From positions 434,001 to 498,000 of the forward strand of contig JBBPEB010000034.1 of NCBI GenBank assembly GCA_039096225.1: a stretch of DNA of 64,000 bases. The letters are read 5' to 3'. Under the pieces are notes generated by a model. It did not search any database, was not told where the DNA came from, and was given only the letters and a program-made list of their open reading frames with translations. Position 1 is the stretch's first letter. Every line of letters starts with the position of its first letter. This DNA is from Blastocystis sp. Blastoise (Eukaryota > Protista > Bigyra: Opalinata). A program made the position numbers and the translations under genes. Positions 4,741 to 49,225 of the stretch are shown here, one piece after another.

Positions 4741-6271
4741 GACTCACTTTCAACTAAAATGATAAAATAATAATATACTCTTATGCTTAAAAGATACCTT
4801 TTATATGAATAATTAATAAATACTTAAAAATATGTTGTAATCAATAACATATACGATGATTCATTGAGATAAGCAAAGCATAAAACTTGCAACTTTTTTT
4901 GAATATTTTTCCTGAAAAAAAAAGAAAATTGAACTATTTTCTTATAAATATCCATGATTCTTTTTCAGTCATTTTTAGATCTTTTTCTATAATTTTTTTC
5001 AGAAACAACTCATTATTCATTATTTCCGCCTTATTATTCATTATTTTTGAAAATAAAAATTCAATATATGCTTATGTTCAAGTCTTGAATGTATATTTAC
5101 ATTATACTATCAAAAAGAGTACTAATTATATTTATTAAATTATCAAAATAGAGTAAATTCTTATCGGTGATATCAAAATAATATGGTTAGATATAGCAAA
5201 TATCAAATAATTACAAATTATTCATTTTTAAATTCAAATTGAGATAGATGATCACACTTTTATGTTTATCTATTCATTTAAACGTCTTTAAAAGTTGGAT
5301 TATGAATCTATGTTTATGGAAAATATATTACTAGATCTGAATTCTTCTATTCTGAAATGAAATCACATTAAAATAATATACTTTCTTCAATAAACTTCTT
5401 ATGATGTTCAAAATTATTGCTACATATGTCTATCAAAGTTACAATCATTTTAAGCATTATTCAAGCATAAATTAGTATATATTAATTGAGCTATATGAGA
5501 AATAATATCTTTTATTTATACTTTTATTAAATAAAATATCATTAAATGTACTTATTATATATTTAAATATAAATAACATGAAAAAAGGGAACCTACTATA
5601 TTCTTTATATTTTATTTTTATTAAATTTTGTCAATAACAATTCATATTAAAGTATTCTTAATATTTTACTATTTTTTTATTGTTTCCATTTCTTATATAT
5701 ATATCCATCAAATCTATTGACTATTCTATGATTATCAATATGATTTATAAATAAAACTATATTCTCTATGTTATCATAATAAAAATGAAACTCTTAACTA
5801 GTTGAACTATCACTAAATAATTTATTAAGTATTATTCTATTTATAATATAATCATATAATCATTATTTTTACTAGTTGTATATATATATCCATTCCCATT
5901 TTATTTAATAATATTTTCTTTGATAAATATCATAATAATACATAAGAAAAAAATGTTTTTTTGGCATTAAAAAGTCTCTCATAGTATTTATACATATATT
6001 ATACATAATCCTAAGTTTCATTATAATAGGTTTTGAATTAACAAGAGAAGTTTTTAATAAAAATGATCTAAAAATATTTTACACTGAATATTATCAATGA
6101 TTAACTTTTTAAAAACAAAACTCACGCATAATATTATTAAATAAATAAATGCAGAAATAAATACTAATACAATAAATATATAATAAAAATATATATAGAT
6201 AATCAAAAATATATAAACACATAAAAATTTAAAACAAAAAATAAACAATTAAAATTTAATAAACATAAGAA

Positions 6272-9200
6272 TTACACAGATTTTAATACTTGAGTATACT
6301 CATTAATAAGAATATCATCAAACATATCTTCCATTTTTTGTCGAATAGTACCACTAGTACCATTACTTTGAGAATCTACTAAAAAGTCTTCATCAAATAT
6401 ATAATTATTACCTTCAACTCTTCTACCATCAAAAACATTATTATCAATTTCTTCTCTTAATTTATTTGCACTTAATAATATTTTATTACTTTTAATAGGC
6501 ATAAAATGTACTTTAACATTACGTTTAACAATAATATCACATATTTTATGATACTGTTCATTCAAATCAATTCCATTAAAGGGATATACTAATTTACATT
6601 TTGGTAATAAATTATGCATAGGATCTCCACCACATAATAATAATATATGAGTATAACCAGGTAATTTATCAATTTCTTTTAATGCTTCTATTAAACCACC
6701 ATTCACGTCTTTACAATTTGAACAACAACCATTACAAAAACCATTTCCTGTTCTTTTTTTATTATTTAAAAAGTCATCAGAGAAATCATTTGGTTTACTC
6801 ATTCCACTTGAAAGAATTGATAATTGATCATCATAATTACTATATTGAACAACTTGATAACGAATAGAAGCATTATTCTTTCCCAAAATTTCATTACGTC
6901 TTTCATCTAATTTCTTTAATACATTGCCAAAGAATTGTTTTGTACTATCATAATACTGATGTTGATTACCAGATGTGCATATAACAATAGATACAACTAA
7001 ATTTGTAGGTGATTTTATATCTCTCCTTTCACATTCTTCTGTCTTTATATCTTGATCTGTAAAAGAAGACATATCTACTTTAGTATAATAATCAGGTATT
7101 TGTTCATTACTAAGATCAGCTGCATGAGATTCATTAGTTTCATTCAAATAATCATCAAAACTAAGTGACCAAATAACTGCATTACTTATCCAACGAGCAG
7201 TACCATCACTTGACCAATCACTATATAACTTACTAGCTGCTGTATCTATTACTATTCTACCATAATTCTGATATGCATCTTTTATCATTACAGCAGCATG
7301 ACCATTTTGTTCTCTTGCAAATGTTTTAAAACCACAATTAACTAATTCATCTTCATCAATATTTGCTAATGTTACACCTTCAAATATTTTATTTAAACCA
7401 TAATTAATAGGTAATCTACATTCTTTATTAAACAAATCTTCACCAATAGGAACAAATTGACCATAACCTGGATCTTTATCATCATCTACTTCATCTATCT
7501 TCTTCTCATAAATCCAACCACGTCCATCTATCTTCTCTTCAGTATCACATAATTCACTTATATGATAAGGACCATCTTCATAATTAAAGAATTTACAAGC
7601 TTCAAAATCTAATGGAGAATTCTCTAACATAAACATAATACCACCACGATGAGCATGGAATATATGTAAACATTTTATAAAACTATTCAAATAATTAAAA
7701 TCACCTTGATGTTCTGGATCTCCTAAAACACCATCACCAGGACTACATGTAATAACTACACTTCTATATTTACCTGATCTTAATCGATCCATAGCATCAA
7801 AATAATCATATACTATATCTACTTTAAATCCTTTCACTTTTAATTTAGCTACAGGTCCTTTCTTTAAATTATCAACAGTAACATCAGGATCAACTTGATT
7901 TCCTTGTTCATCTATATTATTAGGTCTAGCAGTATATAAAACAACAAATAATACATTAAATTGATCAAAAGCACCATCTCTACCTAAATCATCACTTGAA
8001 TCATCAAAATTTTCATCCTTCTCTAATTTAACAATTCTATAATTATTATTATTACCAGAATAAAAATCTAAAAACTTAGCACGTCGTTGATATTCACCAA
8101 ATTCATCAATAATTCTCTTTATATCTGCTGGATGGAAAACATCATTGAATTTATTTTCTAATAAATTTTCATAATATATAGTATCACACATATAATTACA
8201 TATAGTATTAGGATTAGTAGTAGGTGTATGCATATTCTCTAAAGCAGTAGGAAGTTGATGTATATCACTACACCATATAAAAGAAGGGAAAATATTCTCA
8301 TAATCTACTATACTATATCCAATACCTATTCCTATAAAAGAAGTTTCACTACTTATAATCACATTCTTAATTTCTTTACGAGCTATTTCACAAGAAATAC
8401 CATCAGTAAATACAAATTCCATACTTGAATAAGGACGACTATTACATACAGAAGTAGCTTGTTTTATTACTTGATCAATACATGTAGAAGGAGTAGGAGA
8501 AGAGAAATGTTGAAATAAAGAAGAAAGAATTGTATATGTCCAAATTTCATAAGATTGTAAACCTGTTCCAATACAATAACATTTATCTTTTGCTATCCAT
8601 ATATCTACAGCTGATACAGATAATTCACTTAAACATCTTATAAATAATAATATAGTATGAATTGAATGACGAATATTTAATATATTAAAAGAAGAACATT
8701 TACAATCTATTATTATACTAATAGAATAAGCACGAATCTTACCTCCTGACTTCTTCTTAAATAATTTACCATTACCTGTTTTAGTTATCAAGAAATTAAT
8801 ATAATTTCTTAAATGAATTGATGTACCTGTAACAGAAGCAATCCAAGAAGTAGCTTTATTTGGAGGAATTATAGAATTATTCATAGAATCATATATTAAT
8901 TCCTTACTAATAATACTACTCATTTGATTCAATATTAATTTATTTCCTCCATTAGGAACATGTTCTAAATCTGTTTGAGCAACAGAAGGAAGAATAATAG
9001 TTTCTCCTGTTTTTTGGAATAAACTAACTACATAAGGCATATCATAACATTTGTCAAGTTCTGATAAATGAGATATCTTATCATCCTTTATATCTTGTAG
9101 AGGAATAGATAATATAGATAATAAATCGATTTCTTTAGAATTCACACTATTTTGACTTGGATATACTACTTCTAATATATCTTTATTTGATTCAAGTAAT

Positions 9201-11391
9201 TCAGATGAATAAAACATATTTAACAATGAATCAGAAAGTGGTTGAGAACGTAAAGAAGCTATGTTTGATACATTCATCATATTCTCTTTAAAATTGTTCT
9301 TTAATTGATCATTCATTTCATTCAAAAGTACTTCAGGAAGTCTTTCATCTTGTATTAAGCCATCAGATTGTATATGGAATAAAAATAAATGTTGAAGATG
9401 ATTTGTAAAGAAACTAGTAATTTCAGGTAAATCACTTAATAATTGTTCAGAATAACCATCAGATAATATAAAGAATGATTGACTTAGAAGATCTTTAGAA
9501 GGTTGTTCAAAAGCAAATAAATCTAATGGTGTTGAAGGTATCTTTTTCACTTTTTCTAAATCATAAATAATAGAAATCTTTTCATATAAATTATCTTTTG
9601 TTGGTATTAATTTAAATGCCTGTGAACGACCTCCTGTACAATATAGAGAAGTTGGTATACCTAAACAATCACAAATAAGTAATAATAAACAACCTATAGT
9701 ACTTCTTAATCTTGATTTATTCACTTTATGACTAAAATTCACATCACATATCAAATTCACTCGAGGAATATATTTATTCTCTCTCTTTTCACTCTTACGT
9801 ATACTATTCACATAATATGATAATATACCTTTATAATTAACCAATATAAAATCTATAAGATTTTGATTTCTATTAATAGCTTCTATATTAATTTGTTTCA
9901 AACGATCTTCATTTGATGATGTTATTTTAACTAAATCTAATATATTCTTTCGAGACATTACATCTTTAAATAAATTAGATAAAGACATAGATCTAAACTC
10001 TTGTAAAATCTTTTTAATATCTTTTATCTTAATTTTAATTTCTTTAGGATCATCTTTTGAAAACAATTGCTTAATTGAGTCTTGTGTTTCTTCAGGTGTA
10101 CTATTAATAGTATTATCACATAACAAATCACCTATATTTATATAGGATTCTCTTATTTTACAAATCTCTTTAAATTTACTTAGACTATTTTCTATTTCTT
10201 CATCTAATTCTTTAAATAAAGACATATATTGTTTAATTTTATTCTGTTGAATTGAAAGAGAATTAGAAGCTTCAAAAGAAAGTTGATATAATTCTTTTGC
10301 TTTTGAATGATCATTAGTAACATCTTGATAATAATCATCTAATGCTTCACATTTCTTCTTTATATCAAATAATTCTTTCAAAAATAAATCTATATTCTCA
10401 TCAGCAACTTCTTCAAGCTTTGAAGAGAAATATGAAGAAGGATCTGCAGGACGATGAGGTATAGTATTATCTATATATATATATAATAGTTTTGACTTAT
10501 TGAATAGATTATAGTAAACTGCTATTTAAATAAATCAAATAATTATGTATTTACAAATTATTATTGGATAGAAAGTAATATATAATAATATTTCTTTTTA
10601 AATACAAAAAATTACTTAATATATATATATATATATACCTAAAGTTAGAGATGATAAAGATGTGGACAAGGAGAACGATCTTTCATCTATATATATTATA
10701 TAATTTAATAATAATAAATATTTTTCTAAATAATGTAAAAAAGCTTTTAATATCTAACAAAATAATAAAATAATTGAAAATATACCTTAAAAAGCAATAC
10801 AAATTTGACATGTATTGCTTCTTGTGGAGTACATTGACTTTCATCAACTACATGATTATACCACTCTAATTGTATAATATATCCTGATCCATGTTCCAAA
10901 GAAAGAGAAGCAATCTATAGAAAAAAATATAAATATTTGTATATAAGAATATATAATTATAGTTAAATAGCTATAATAACTAATATTAAAATAAGAATTA
11001 TTAATATACACATTGTTTATCAGATTCGCTCTGTTTTGACATTGATTTCATTGGATAAAGTTCTTGAATTTGAGGATTCGTATTTAGAAAAGTTTCTTGA
11101 CTAGTATCTAAAACAATATAAATCGGTTCTTTTAATTGTAGCAATTCTTGCATAATAGAATCTTTGTTGATCGATGGTGAACCAGATGCATCAATACTAT
11201 AATCGAGTTGAAATTCTTCGGGAGTCCAGTTCTATATTGTTAGATTATGAGAATATTTATAAACAGAAAAATACCATGTATCTTGATAAAAACATCGTAG
11301 CTGTTTCATTGTTCGCAACGTTGGTTAATGCATATTCATATTGTGTTGTTTCACAGTTACACGTAAATTGGTATGCAACTTGAGGATTCAT
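6272..11391 (-). CDS. Large multi-vWA-domain protein (midasin/CobT-like vWA, GATase-like middle domain, C-terminal vWA)
   Basis: Single ~4.2-kb exon 6272-10470 holds the 1369-aa ORF. PPNKATSW..GTSIHLRNYINFL..GKLFKKKSGGKIRAYSISIIID resembles the midasin C-terminal region, and there are vWA-type FILSDG and FVFTDG strands. Small 5' exons start at ATG 11391; the phase of one 5' junction is unresolved. Confidence 0.7.
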
Positions 11392-42324: not shown

Positions 42325-42868
42325 TTGAAGTATAATACTAGATGCAGTTCTCATATCAAATTGATGATTAGGATAAGTATCTTTTACTTGAGATATACTT
42401 TTACCTAATATTTCCATTACTAAATAATCATAACTTGGATTTGATCTATAGAAAAACAAATATTTATAAATATATAAAAAATATTTAATCTTAGTAATAA
42501 TTTAAAAGATACTGAAAATCGATCCATTTGGCGGCACACGAATAAGGTTGCATTTCTTTCAATATAGAACTCTCTGTTTGTAAAACCAATTTTAATCCAG
42601 TATCTATAGAGAATATAGCATATTTATATGTTTAAATTCGATAAATTCATAAAACATAAATAGAATCAACAATTACTTCGATGCTCAACTTTAACAGCCA
42701 CAGTAGTTGGATCAACTGCAGTTCTTGCGGTATATATTTCACTGTATGTTCCCTATAAATTTAATAAACACTGCATAGAATTAATCAACTTCATACTTTT
42801 CCTATTTTATCAAGAAGAATCCATTTATTATCAAGGACAGATCCAGGACGAATAGGAGGAACACTCAT
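40554..42868 (-). CDS. Tau-tubulin kinase / casein kinase 1 family Ser/Thr kinase
   Basis: KIGKGTYSEIY, VAVKVE, YLVMEILGKS, GYIHRDIKPSNF, IIDFGLCR, AQFRGTTLYASPNSH..ELGRRDD, GLPW and PDY. Confidence 0.9.
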
Positions 42869-43688
42869 TATCTATTTTATTATTTGAATTTTTTAAGAAT
42901 ATTGGATTTCTATTTTCAAAAAAAGGGCTTTGATGAAACAATTAGTTTTTTCATGTATTTTTGTTAGTAGAATCATGGTAATTTTCTTTCACATTTAAAA
43001 GATCATTTTATCCATTTGTAAATAATTAGTTACTGTTCAATTCGATAATATAATATTGCTTTCATGTTGTTATTATAAAGGGATGAAATTCATTCCTAAT
43101 AAAAACACAAAAAGATCATGGAATGTAAACTTAAGTCATTAGTTGTTCATAATATTCGACTTTTTAAATTATACATATATATCTTGCAAATAATATAATA
43201 AAAATGATTCATTTTAAAACAAACCATACTCATTTATGATGATACTTTAAGCTTTTATTATAAATTAAGTCATTAACTAACTTTTTGTGTTTCCGTATTT
43301 CATTTTATTCAAGGCATTTTATGAAAAAAAAAACGAAAAATAAAATGCAAGTCATGAATTCCTTCTCAAACATTGCTCTTCTACTTCTATATGATAAATG
43401 CAATCGAGAGAAATCATATTTCAGCCAAATAATAAACATGTAACGAAATTAAAACGAGTATTTGACTATAATTAATTGAGTATGTCTTAGAGATTTCTTT
43501 CAATGTTATTATTCCTACAATATTAATATGTTATAGTCTATTCTAGAAGATTTAATTTGAGTAATGGGTAAACAAAGAAATTGCTTGCTGGCAAAACATA
43601 TTCTTTCTAGAAATTTCCGTTTTTCCAAATACGCCATTTCCATATAATTATTCACTTAATCACTATACTTTTTTTTATACCCGACAAT

Positions 43689-43726
43689 AACCAATAAAAT
43701 GTCATAAACCATTGAATAGCCAATCA
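43689..43726 (+). promoter_or_regulatory. Tandem CCAAT boxes upstream of Argonaute
   Basis: AACCAATAA (43689) and AGCCAATCA (43718) about 29 bp apart, ~170-200 bp before the ATG. Confidence 0.3.
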
Positions 43727-43895
43727 AATCCGTCAATAGCATCTCTTATGGAGTTACTTCGGTTTCTTCCAGAAAACCCGACACTTTTTTTGAGACATCG
43801 CTGTTTTGCATAACTTTATTGTTTTGTGATATCAACAATTTCGTTATTTTTGAAAAGCTCTCTTTTTCACCACTATACACTAATACTAAGCAACA

Positions 43896-46543
43896 ATGAA
43901 TACCACTCAATGTTCAATTTGCAAAGAATTCAAGCCTAATTCTTGTTTTTCGAAGAATCAACTAAGAACCCAACATAAGTGCCAAGACTGTCTTGCTGGG
44001 GGTGCTCGTATACATATAAATTTACATATTGTTTAAGTCTTTGTTACTTTTTTTATAAACTTTGATCAATTATTTTTTATATTTTATTATATTTTTTCTT
44101 TTGTAGCTGCTCATAATGAGTCCAATAAACCTCAGGAAGTTAAAATTCCTGGAATGAATCTTAAAGTTCAAGTTCCTCCAGGAATGTCTGCTCCTAAAGT
44201 TCAAGGTCCTCCTGGAATGAATGCTGGTAAGAAACAAGGTCCTCCTGGAATGTCTGCTCCTAAAGTTCAAGGACCTCCAGGAATGTCTGCTCCTAAAGTT
44301 CAAGGACCTCCTGGAATGTCTGCTCCTAAAGTTCAAGGTCCTCCTGGAATGTCTGCTCCTAAAGTTCAAGGACCTCCTGGAATGTCTGCTCCTAAAGTTC
44401 AAGGTCCTCCTGGAATGTCTGCTCCTAAGAAACAAGGACCTCCAGGAATGTCTACTCCTAAACCAGTTCAATCTGTTCCAGCTCCTAAGCCAGCTCCAGC
44501 TCCAGCTGGTCCTCAAGGTGCTTGGGGTAAACCTAGAAAAGCAGCTGCTGCTACTCCTGCTGCTTCTAATTTCCCTGCTCCTATTAGTAGATCTTCTGCT
44601 GGTCCTGCTCCTATGCCTGTTTCAAGACCTGCTTGGGGTCCAAATCCATCTTCTTTATCAAATATGCCTAAAGCTGCAATTGGTAAACAAGGTCCTACTA
44701 TATCTCCTGTAGTAAGCTCAAATCAAGCCTCATTATCTTTATCCAAAGCTAATGATGCTTCATCTGCTCTTACTCAGAATAATAGAAATGTTGTTGGTCC
44801 TGTAATACCTGCTCCTTCTGAATCAAATGCTGAAGCTATTCAAGAACTTGTTGTTGGTGAAAAACAAGAAAAAACTTATGATATTGGACCTTATATGGAT
44901 GGTTGTAGACCTACTAAAAAACATGGTACTAAAGGTAAAATTACCAAAGTTGCATCTAACTTTTTTAGGGTTAAACAAACAAAAGATTTAACATTTTATC
45001 AATATGATGTAGTGTATAATGTAAAAGATAAAGAAAATAATTTTAAGAAAGTTGCTCTTCCAGCTGATAAAGCAAAAATATTATTTGAAACTATGAAAAG
45101 TACACCTGATTATTTATCTAGAGTTGGTGATCGTTATTTATTTACTGATGGTAAAGCTATTGCTTATTCTTTATTGAAATTTCAATCTTATGATGCTTTA
45201 GTATGTATTCTCTATTTTATTTTATTTATTAATTATATATATATATATTTCACGTATAGATTAGTATGAAAGAAGGTGATAAGAGTCGTGTTTTTAATAT
45301 AGTTATTACTATTACCCCTAATGTAATTGAAGTCAATAAAGATACATTAAATAAACCAGATAATGCTAAAGTATTACCTCCTATGGATATGATGCATATC
45401 TATAAACAAACACTCACTAAATCTTATTTTGGTCGAAGTGTATATGATGCTCGTTTAGGTAGTACAGTATTAGGTGCAGGTGCAGAGTTATTATGGGGTT
45501 ATTCACAAGCATTCCGTTATTGTGAAGATGGTTTATTTAATATTATGGAACCTACTGCTAGTCAATTTCATATGGGAGGTCCTCTTATGGATCTATGTAA
45601 TGATGTATTTATTTATATTTGTTTTTTTTTTTTTTTTTATATTTATTTTTTTTTTTTTATTATTATTATTATTATTTTATGTTATATATTATATATTATA
45701 TAGATTTTATTTACGGATATAAAAGTAGTAGGTAAATCTTGTCCTCCAGGTAGAAATTGTTCTTTAGAACCAAGACAAATTGAATCTTTAAAAAGTGAAT
45801 TGATTACTTTAAAGGTAACAACAAAACATTTAGGATATGAACGTAAATATGGTATTACTGGTATTTCTAATGTTGCTGCTGATAAAGATATGTATGTTAA
45901 TTTTATTTTTATTTTTATTATTATTTTTTTTTTTTAATAATTACAATATAATAACCTATATATATATATATAGGTTTGAGATAGAAGATGCTAATGGTAA
46001 TAAGAAGAAAGTATCTGTAGCTCAATATTTTGCTCAACAATATGGTATTCGTTTACGTTTCCCTGGTTTACCTTGTGTACAAAAACAAGATTGTAAATTA
46101 CCTATAGAAGTATGTAATGTACCTGCTGGTCAAAGACGTACTCAAAAAATGAATTCGAAACAACAACAAATTATGGTTAAGGTATTTATTATTATTTTTT
46201 TATTTTATTTTTTATTATTTTTTTTTTTTTTTTATTATATATTATTATTATTATTATTATATACTATATAGAGTAGTGCTATTCCTCCAGATCAGCGTAA
46301 AGAGAAGATAATGAATTATGCTAGAGGTCAAGATTATCAAGGTAATGGATATTTAGATGCTGCGGGTATTAGTATTGATAAGAATATGACTCCTGTACCT
46401 GCTCGTGTTTTAGATGATCCTACTTTAATGTATAAGAAAGGAACAAGAGATGAAGCTATTCGTGCTAAAGATGGTCAATGGAATCTTAGAGATGTTCAAC
46501 TCTATAAAACTGTTCCTATTGTAGGTTTATTTGTTATTATTAT

Positions 46544-46582
<39 letters not shown>

Positions 46583-48247
46583 CTTTTTTTTTTTTTAATA
46601 TTTTATTATATATATAAAATCCTAAATAAATAAATTAATACTATAGAAATCCTGTGGTTTACTTATATTAAATGTGCGTCGTGGTCGTCCTACACGTTAT
46701 GATTCAAATATAATTAAATCATTTTTAACAGGATTAAAATTTAGTGGTGTAGTTATCGGTGCTGATTGTTTAGCTTCTTTAGATTTACGTAGTGAAACAA
46801 ATGGTGATAGTTATGATACTATTTATAATGGTTTAATTAAAGAATATGAACGTTGTAGACGTGGTCGTTTTGGTGCACCTCAAATTATATTTGTGTTTAT
46901 GCCTACTAAAGATAGTACTATGTATAGATCCATTAAGAAAGTTACTGATAGTATTTTAAGTGTTCCTTCTCAATGTCTTGTTTGGGAACGTAATTTTAGT
47001 TCAGATCGTGGATTATCTCCTCAATATACAGGTATTTATTTTATTTATTATTTATTTTTATTTATTATTATTATGATTTTTTTTTTTTTTTTTTATAAAT
47101 CTTAATAAATACATTTAATATATCCACTTTTTCAAATAATTATAATCATAATAATATACAGCTAATGTTGCCTTAAAGGTAAATACTAAGTTAGGTGGTA
47201 TGAATACATTCTTACAAAATGATAATCGTCTTATTGTATATATATATATATATATATATATAATAATAATATAGTTATTAATATATATATATATATATAG
47301 TTCAGTAAGAATACAATGATATTAGGTGCTGATGTAACACATCCTATGAGAGGAGAAGCTGATGTTTCTATTGCTGCTGTTGTAGCTTCTGTTGATCCTC
47401 ATGCTAGTATATATATTGGTGAAGCTCGTTGTCAAAAAGCTAGACAAGAAATTATTTCTGATTTAGAAGAAATTATGGTTAGTTTATTAGGATCTTATCA
47501 AAAATATAATAATGGTAAACTTCCTGAAAAATTAATCTTTTATAGAGATGGTGTTGGTGATGGTCAATTTGGAATTGTTTTAGATCAAGAAATACCTCGT
47601 ATTTTTGAAGCTTGTAAATTTTACAATTATAGACCTCAACTTACATTTTTAATTGTTCAAAAACGTCATAATGCTCGTTTCTTCCCTCTTGATCGTAATT
47701 TCACTTCTAGAACAGGAAATGTACCTGCAGGTACTGTTGTAGATACGAATATTACTGATAGATGGGCATTTGATTTCTATCTTAATTCTCATAATGTTTT
47801 ACAAGTATATATTTATATATATAATATATTAATTATTATTATAAATATTATATATATTTTAATTGTTATTTGTTCTTATAACTAATATATATAAATAGGG
47901 TACTGGTCGTAGTGGTTATTATACATGTATTTATGATACTGTTGGTTTTAATGCTGATGATTTACAAGAATTAACATATCGTCTTTGCTATTTATTCTGT
48001 AGAGCTACAAAATCTATTAGTGTTTGTGCTCCTGCTCGTTATGCTCATCATCTTGCTTTTAGACATAGAGATATATTAGGCGTTGCCGATGGGGGTCGTA
48101 GAGGGTATTTATATATATTTATATATGTTATAAAATATTATATTTTATTTAATAATAAATAATTATCTATTTTTTTATAGTGATAATCTTAGAATTCAAA
48201 GTGTTAAAATTGATAAAACTATGTCCACAAAGATGTATTTCGTTTAA
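43896..48247 (+). CDS. AGO: Argonaute (AGO clade, slicer tetrad DEDH) with N-terminal Stc1-like zinc finger and PPGM repeats
   Basis: GTKG.ITKVASNFF (N domain), VSVAQYF..YGIRLRFPGLPC..LPIEVC (PAZ), GQWN, YRSIKK..SQC..NVALKVNTKLGG.N (MID), GADVTHP / RQEII / FYRDGVG / YAHHLA (PIWI) and terminal MYFV*. Exon 1 (43896-44007) splices in frame to 44107. Confidence 0.95.
44175..44462 (+). repeat. Coding 33-bp tandem repeat, 9 units (PPGMSAPKVQG)
   Basis: CCTCC(A/T)GGAATGTCTGCTCCTAAAGTTCAAGG(A/T) units with synonymous variation and two divergent copies. Confidence 0.95.
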
Positions 48248-48516
48248 AAGTACTATTGTCGTTCTAGTCTTGTGTTAACGGCTTTTTTTTTTAATAAGTA
48301 ATTATTGTTTTTATATGTTTTAATTCATTTTTTTTGTGTTTCCTTATTTTCATTTTATTAATGATCTTAAAGAAATATAAAGTTTATGCATTATTATGTT
48401 GTTTATTTCTTTTTGTTTAGTTTATGAAAAATATGTTATAAATATACTTATTTTAGAAGAAAAAAATAAAAATAGAATTTCTTCAAGTAATAAAAAATTT
48501 AAATTATTTTTTGATT

Positions 48517-48589
48517 GTCCGTGTAGTGTAATGGCTAACACATTGCTCTCCGGAGGCAAGGATTGTGGGTTCGAGTCCCACCTCGGACG
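48517..48589 (+). tRNA. tRNA-Arg(CCG)
   Basis: Cloverleaf: acceptor stem GTCCGTG/CTCGGAC (one T-T mismatch), D-arm GTGT/ACAC, anticodon arm TTGCT-CTCCGGA-GGCAA, T-arm GTGGG-TTCGAGT-CCCAC, G73 and a downstream T-run. Confidence 0.92.
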
Positions 48590-49225
48590 TATTTATTTTC
48601 TAGATTTAAAATGAATAGTAGTGTATATGCACTTACAAGATGTTTTATTTCATTTTGACGGAATTCAAAGCATCTATTTTTATTTTAAAATGAGTTATTC
48701 ATGCTAAAAAGAGATTTTAAATGAAAATGATCAACATTACTTTTTTTAATGATCTTTTTAATGATTTGATACTATATAAGGATAATATGGTTCAATTCTA
48801 TTTGTAAATTTAATGAAATAGCAATATTCTGTTTGTAAATTAGAATTAGATATGTTTATTGAGATAAATATATCATAAATAATTATTAGGAAATAATTAG
48901 TTTGTTTTGGAGTTACTTTGAATATGCAAGATGATTTTTAAAAATGAGTTTATATTCAATTGAAACTTGAAAATGGAAAAAACAATAAATATACATATAT
49001 TTAAACATTGAGAAAATAGAGATAACCAAAAAAAGAGTTGAAATGAAGCTGAAAAGAGTCATAATTATACAAGATAATAAAGAATAGTCACAATTTGCAA
49101 AAGTGACTAAAAGAAATGAGTTAATATATTCATCTATATACTAAAATAAACTTAAATGTTCATCTAAAAAAAGAGTAGAAATACAAAAATATATATATAT
49201 ATTTATTATTTATAGATCACTCAAT

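Follow-up and report, generated by a model that had tools for sequence, protein, structure and literature searches.

The closest described counterpart of the gene analysed here is Stc1 of the fission yeast Schizosaccharomyces pombe (Pfam family PF12898, structure 2LUY), which is a separate 25-kDa adaptor having two zinc fingers; its disordered tail recruits the Clr4 complex (CLRC). This complex is reportedly bound by the disordered C-terminal region of Stc1. The finger (LIM) domain mediates the association with Ago1, and LIM-domain mutants still bring CLRC when tethered; the substitutions K100A and R116A leave Stc1 stable and CLRC-recruiting when tethered, but disrupt the association with Ago1 and RITS (Bayne et al. 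2010). Stc1 family members in stramenopile algae were reported in the same study (Bayne et al. 2010). Another zinc-finger protein, GTSF1, has tandem zinc fingers and a disordered tail, accelerates PIWI slicing and has been likened to Stc1 in architecture. The present analysis concerns an Argonaute gene of the stramenopile protist Blastocystis sp. Blastoise (strain Rus-B), which lies in a stretch of 64 kb (C26:434001-498000, hereafter the window) and whose first exon encodes a zinc finger of the Stc1 type. The gene product is probably best read as a single finger of the Stc1 finger-2 type tethered to a predicted slicer-competent Argonaute, where it would act as a protein-contact module on or beside the Argonaute and not as a complete bridge from RNA interference (RNAi) to chromatin.

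The gene model built from the sequence has 11 exons on the plus strand (43896-48247; Table 1), a reading frame of 3432 nt with the end ...KMYFV-TAA and a product of 1143 amino acids. This model is identical, letter for letter, to the public protein KAK8789888.1 (hypothetical protein WA158_006668). The coordinates and the in-frame splice which an earlier sequence-only reading of the window had proposed for exon 1 were reproduced exactly. Exon 1 (112 nt) ends in phase 1 and is joined in frame to exon 2 (...CLAGGA/P/AHNESNK), its start codon has an A at -3, and intron 1 resembles the remaining introns in length, GC content, GTAT.. donors and ..AG acceptors; all ten introns of the gene are of the GT..AG type with 59-130 nt and 3-14% GC. 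Retention of intron 1 leads to a stop in frame after 46 amino acids. For the annotation of Rus-B, STAR was run with a minimum of 3 reads for each junction, together with Stringtie, Braker3 and Mikado, the last being set to favour introns strictly supported by RNA-seq (PMC10690189). The share of sampled 31-mers from 43600-48300 was 0.67 in run X1 and 0.50 in a polyA gut metatranscriptome, the expected share being 0.66 for the spliced form with all eleven exons, 0.65 without exon 1 and 1.0 for DNA. As the share in run X1 is close to that expected for exon-internal words (0.67 against 0.66), the gene is present there in spliced form; the shares indicate that the Argonaute gene is expressed and spliced and do not resolve exon 1 alone. 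The fusion of finger and Argonaute is held to be real with high confidence.

Exon 1 encodes a single complete C4 zinc finger, CSICKEFKPNSCFSKNQLRTQHKCQDC, which aligns column by column with finger 2 of Stc1, CTACQQTKGINEFSKAQRHVLDPRCQIC, and carries the signature C-x2-C-x3-K-x4-[FY]SKxQ ... C-x2-C. The peptide and the motif C-x2-C-x3-K-x4-FSKxQ-x6-C-x2-C given by the sequence-only reading were recovered as such, the motif having a single occurrence in all six reading frames of the window together and none in 200 shuffles. The search of exon 1 against Pfam (E up to 10) gave Stc1 as the sole match, with 22.1 bits (E 2.3e-4; gathering cut-off 24.8 bits) over positions 51-83 of the 84 profile positions, corresponding to the second finger of the pair. 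The earlier expectation of a Pfam Stc1 match was thus borne out in the identity of the family and in its first rank by profile and fold, and not in the score or in the extent of the match, which is limited to the finger 2 half. The genome (33.3 Mb, 34 contigs) was also searched with the Stc1 profile, and only two fingers were obtained, one in Argonaute exon 1 and the other at C33:1175063-1175158. The latter (locus L002:1459-1608, minus strand) lies in a small first exon encoding MEFELCSKCLICKDKNSFTKSQWKSKDLKICKDC and an acidic run DADEDEE, which is spliced to a protein with an ASCH (RNA-binding, PUA-like) domain.

A profile of these two Blastocystis fingers placed 2LUY at the top of 177,635 PDB sequences (E 0.064), with an alignment covering both Stc1 fingers and finger 2 in full. 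The numbering offset of 2LUY was fixed by C83, C93, K100 and R116; K100 of S. pombe then corresponds to K13, and K28 is the counterpart of R116, which directly precedes the third cysteine, both positions being basic here. The AlphaFold model of residues 1-40 had a mean predicted local distance difference test score of 79. The Foldseek comparison of this finger model with 350,542 PDB chains again ranked 2LUY first, with a probability of 0.98, a template modelling score of 0.73 and a root-mean-square deviation of 1.1 A over 34 columns at 29% identity, and the runners-up were PHD fingers with probabilities of 0.30 or less. Among the ESM-Atlas clusters, the nearest ones with a name also have PF12898 (scores 0.88 and 0.85, to be taken as leads only), one of them from diatoms. 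The finger thus shares with S. pombe Stc1 the finger-2 layout C-x2-C-x3-K-x4-FSKxQ-x6/7-C-Q-x-C, a lysine at K100, a basic residue at R116 and a presumed functional tie to an Argonaute, and Stc1 is its best PDB match by profile and by fold. It differs in being one finger fused to an Argonaute, with no such tail and with a score under the cut-off. Because the Pfam, PDB profile and fold results agree, though none is significant alone, homology of the finger to the Stc1 fingers is regarded as quite likely.

Several observations weigh against the tethered-finger reading, and they concern the gene model, the kinship of the finger and its partner. With regard to the gene model, the evidence for the junction of exon 1 and exon 2 (44007/44107) is indirect. 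The nearest Argonautes among the matches listed, from chytrids, Mucoromycota, Plasmodiophora, green algae and an oomycete, share only 35-37% identity with the protein, and the databases gave no orthologue. The finger was seen in 0 of the 119 Argonaute homologues there; the same N-terminus, which the sequence-only reading had proposed to look for, was accordingly absent from the Argonautes of this set. The GC content at third codon positions (GC3) is 0.32 in exon 1 as compared to 0.10 in exons 2-11, where the maximum in any 37-codon window is 0.22 (binomial p 1.3e-4). This shift could stem from a recent gain of the exon, from a codon ramp at the 5' end or from less efficient translation. The unlike codon make-up and the lack of such an exon in other listed Argonautes are what would be expected if exon 1 were untranslated with the Argonaute, as an annotation artefact or a minor isoform, and if the working protein began from the ATG at 44154 (M53). 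This is considered distinctly unlikely, as the pipeline behind the public model favours introns with RNA support and exon 1 comprises exactly one complete finger with an A at -3, joined in frame through a typical intron, the motif being absent from all shuffles. Moreover, the other coding segments of the window have GC3 of 0.18-0.36, so that exon 1 is like an average gene and it is the Argonaute body which is the biased outlier, and the ASCH gene likewise has its finger in a small first exon.

With regard to kinship, the Stc1 score lies under the gathering cut-off for exon 1 alone and also for the whole protein (15.0 bits, E 0.039). The E-values of the PDB sequence and fold comparisons are about 0.06, so that the top rank is singly non-significant; for the fold this value follows from the shortness of the finger domain (about 30 residues). 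Only one of the two Stc1 fingers is present, and neither a second finger nor an upstream exon for finger 1 was found in the 1 kb between the Argonaute start codon and the divergent kinase gene. The tandem LIM-like finger pair is likewise absent here, and the Stc1 profile search found no tandem Stc1 anywhere in the genome. The search of residues 1-60 against PDB using phmmer gave no match, and the precomputed Pfam list of the public protein does not include Stc1. Strict membership of the Stc1 family thus fails on the Pfam cut-off, the first finger and the tail. In addition, the same finger type heads the ASCH protein, and because of this second copy the finger is a reusable N-terminal module and not an Argonaute-specific device.

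These sub-threshold scores would also suit a generic small C4 zinc ribbon which resembles Stc1 and binds nucleic acid or a partner outside Argonaute biology. The ASCH-gene finger has weak Pfam scores against DUF4428, a double zinc ribbon and FYVE as well, the ESM-Atlas neighbours of the Argonaute finger include phage NinD-type ribbons, and both carriers (the Argonaute and the ASCH protein) are RNA-related, so that contact with RNA is conceivable. Such a ribbon is nevertheless unlikely, since three methods independently put Stc1 first and the match extends over the spacing, the lysine, the FSKxQ box and the basic position that precedes the third cysteine. The location on an Argonaute is also what would be expected from yeast biology. 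The profile search of the genome gave two Ago/Piwi genes, one of them with the Stc1-type finger; from two fingers, two such genes and roughly 6,000-8,500 genes (PMC10690189), the chance of a finger landing on an Argonaute is about 6e-4 as a rough estimate.

The part of the protein which follows the finger was compared with canonical members of the AGO clade (S. pombe Ago1, chytrid and mucoralean proteins). The N, L1, PAZ, L2, MID and PIWI domains are present in the same order, along with the DEDH tetrad and the C-terminal ...MYFV; the protein differs in its 300-residue N-terminal extension with zinc finger and PPGM repeats, in its identity of only 35-37% to the nearest homologues and in its very long branch outside the fungal clade. 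In the whole-protein Pfam search, Piwi (294 bits), PAZ (75 bits) and ArgoL2 (41 bits) were above the cut-offs, and ArgoN (29.8 bits), ArgoMid and ArgoL1 were just under them in the correct order. The PIWI tetrad, which the sequence-only reading had described as intact, was located at D896, E935, D968 and H1049 in the catalytic columns of an alignment of 64 sequences (63 homologues), two of these columns being invariant and two conserved to at least 90%. The gene thus encodes a real Argonaute of the AGO clade from a stramenopile protist, its slicing activity being suggested by the intact DEDH. The second Piwi gene of the genome (C17:834650-838650, minus strand; locus L004 about 5650-9650) has an RGG-rich N-terminus, FYRECIG in place of the catalytic YRDG and no zinc finger, and is probably slicer-dead. 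The finger-bearing gene would then be the one slicer-competent Argonaute gene found in the genome.

The extension between finger and Argonaute body comprises about 265 residues predicted as disordered, in accordance with the long flexible linker proposed by the sequence-only reading. Residues 39-300 are rich in Pro, Ala, Gly and Ser and also in Lys, with nine PPGM repeats. At the nucleotide level, nine near-perfect tandem repeats of 33 nt, each encoding PPGMSAPKVQG, were observed at 44170-44470. The tryptophans of the linker are both in AWG motifs, at residues 177 and 214. The presence of only one C4 finger and the lack of an acidic tail, both of which had been given as caveats at the outset, were confirmed; the linker (residues 39-300) contains no acidic CLRC-type tail and, after the PPGM segment, is followed by the Argonaute body. 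The exons and the first intron are summarized in Table 1.

Table 1. Exons and first intron of the finger-bearing Argonaute gene, with positions in the window
Feature	Position (strand)	Content	Evidence
Exon 1	43896..44007 (+)	37 codons + 1 nt; start codon (ATG at 43896) and complete C4 zinc finger C6, C9, C29, C32 of Stc1 finger-2 type; K13, FSKNQ 18-22, K28	Pfam, 2LUY alignment, fold, public protein
Intron 1	44008..44106 (+)	99 nt, 14% GC; GT donor at 44008 (GTATAC), AG acceptor at 44105-44106 (TTGTAG)	Style and size as introns 2-10; used in public model
Exon 2	44107..45200 (+)	Disordered Pro/Ala/Gly/Ser-rich linker, nine 11-aa PPGM repeats, two AWG motifs, then ArgoN start	Pfam; 100% match to public protein residues 39-402
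Exon 3	45260..45604 (+)	ArgoN end and linker L1	Pfam, splice model
Exon 4	45704..45891 (+)	PAZ, first part	Pfam, splice model
Exon 5	45974..46181 (+)	PAZ	Pfam PAZ 52.6 bits
Exon 6	46272..46520 (+)	Linker L2 and MID start	Pfam ArgoL2 45.9 bits
Exon 7	46647..47031 (+)	MID and PIWI start	Pfam
Exon 8	47162..47235 (+)	PIWI, NVALKVNTKLGG motif	Splice model, public protein
Exon 9	47301..47804 (+)	PIWI core with D896, E935, D968, H1049	Pfam Piwi 170 bits; alignment
Exon 10	47899..48104 (+)	PIWI end	Pfam Piwi 53 bits
Exon 11	48181..48247 (+)	C-terminus ...KMYFV, TAA stop	Splice model, public protein

The relatives of the protein were searched further. Residues 1-45, at Argonaute length, retrieved only the protein itself; with exon 2, the protein search gave nothing in its length band, and the representative protein search gave the protein itself and low-complexity matches to the PPGM repeats. 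A search of metagenome contigs with exon 2 gave no relative, and the exact 30-nt pattern of exon 1 also gave nothing there. In a quick tree, the branch of the protein lies outside the fungal clade and is very long (1.9 changes per site). The T/A-ending codons and the chytrid top matches had suggested that the gene was transferred from gut fungi, an origin which was rejected on account of this branch; the position outside the fungal clade implies that the fungal top matches reflect slow evolution of the fungal proteins and not transfer. Among the best 120 of 396 homologues, no Argonaute of human-subtype Blastocystis or of other opalinates was seen. The absence of a human-subtype protein from the matches listed, together with the very long branch of the tortoise-isolate protein, suggests that this Argonaute gene was lost in the streamlined human Blastocystis lineages. 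Strain Rus-B was obtained from a herbivorous tortoise, and the genomes of its clade have 21-23% GC with introns longer than those of human Blastocystis (PMC10690189). Two further tortoise isolates, Rus-S and Hermann's, are known, and protein identity inside the clade is about 56%.

The surroundings of the gene contain a divergent kinase gene which starts at 42868 on the minus strand, so that the intergenic segment of about 1 kb (42868-43895) is common to the kinase and Argonaute genes. In the 300 nt adjoining the start codon of the Argonaute gene, its GC content rises to 0.32-0.34. A tRNA-like sequence was seen by eye at 48520-48590, some 270 nt past the stop codon of the Argonaute gene.

The sequence-only reading had put the fusion forward as a candidate link, within one polypeptide, between RNAi and chromatin; in such a model small RNAs would be coupled to heterochromatin, and the finger or the linker would recruit a nuclear histone H3 lysine 9 (H3K9) methyltransferase complex. 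The finger is indeed of the Stc1 type, and the six-frame search of the genome revealed a Pre-SET (SUV39-type) match over the Pfam cut-off at C32:683826-684262 and nine chromodomain matches, from which the H3K9-methyl machinery probably exists in this genome. In S. pombe, however, the finger domain is the part that associates with Ago1, and recruitment of CLRC by tethered Stc1 survives mutation of the fingers; the proposal therefore reverses the yeast logic, as the fingers of Stc1 hold the Argonaute and its tail holds the methyltransferase complex. The fused piece corresponds to the Argonaute-binding half of Stc1, the protein has neither an acidic tail nor a clear nuclear localisation signal, and the genome search gave no Stc1 with tandem fingers. 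A chromatin link of this kind is quite unlikely, and with the Clr4-recruiting tail absent the protein does not make a complete RNAi-to-chromatin bridge. The description of the gene as a Rosetta-stone fusion holds for the partnership of finger and Argonaute, as a Stc1-type finger sits on a real Argonaute, and does not extend to the chromatin link, for which the tail is lacking. The six-frame search also gave no Pfam match for RNA-dependent RNA polymerase or RNase III, although exon-split or divergent genes can escape such a search.

The reading of the finger as an Argonaute-contact module draws on the association of the Stc1 finger with Ago1 in fission yeast and on the retention of K100 and R116 as K13 and K28. 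By this analogy, the tethered finger would dock on the Argonaute surface, either its own or that of a neighbouring molecule, or on an Argonaute-associated partner, and with the flexible linker of about 265 residues such contact could be made in cis or from one molecule to another. The two AWG motifs (177 and 214) may provide a second Argonaute-binding element. They are of the kind used by GW/WG Ago-hook adaptors such as Tas3 and GW182 to bind PIWI domains; they differ in being only two and in lying on the Argonaute itself rather than on an adaptor. The outcome may be tuned loading or slicing, or the clustering of Argonautes on a target. The third point to be set against this reading is that the binding partner is a putative one, assigned through the yeast analogy. 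The predicted complex of the finger with zinc against the Argonaute body had a score of 0.00 and gave no verdict, so that it speaks neither for nor against such docking.

Stimulation of slicing in the manner of GTSF1 and a nuclear role are both possible. GTSF1/Asterix also consists of a small zinc-finger module and a disordered segment making protein contacts with an Argonaute-family protein; since it accelerates PIWI slicing with a Stc1-like architecture and the Argonaute here keeps DEDH, the finger might be thought of as a cofactor of this kind working in cis to speed target cleavage. Nevertheless, GTSF1 has CHHC fingers of an origin unrelated to Stc1, is a separate protein of the animal germline, and nothing ties Stc1-type fingers to catalysis, which makes such a role very unlikely.

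The literature search on Stc1-domain fusions and on Blastocystis Argonaute gave nothing relevant, and the Rus-B genome paper makes no mention of Argonaute or RNAi (PMC10690189). The statement of the sequence-only reading that no Stc1-Argonaute fusion has been described holds for the 119 Argonaute homologues and the searchable literature. The protein is public but unnamed, as a hypothetical protein, and represents a natural finger-Argonaute fusion previously undescribed.

Stc1 is known only as the fission-yeast adaptor which couples RNAi to H3K9 methylation, and the occurrence of the finger covalently fused to an Argonaute in a stramenopile, a lineage distant from fungi, provides evidence of the Rosetta-stone kind for an old partnership. 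A much bolder proposal, which we regard as doubtful, is that the partnership of Stc1-type fingers and Argonautes is ancient and general; the Blastocystis finger would have been captured in cis and would dock on its own or another Argonaute to gate or cluster the enzyme, possibly in nuclear chromatin-directed silencing, and the ASCH protein would be a new Argonaute partner. As one polypeptide with two candidate residues, K13 and K28, the protein offers a simple system for mapping the contact surface. The gene also means that a slicer-type Argonaute has been retained in at least one lineage of Blastocystis.

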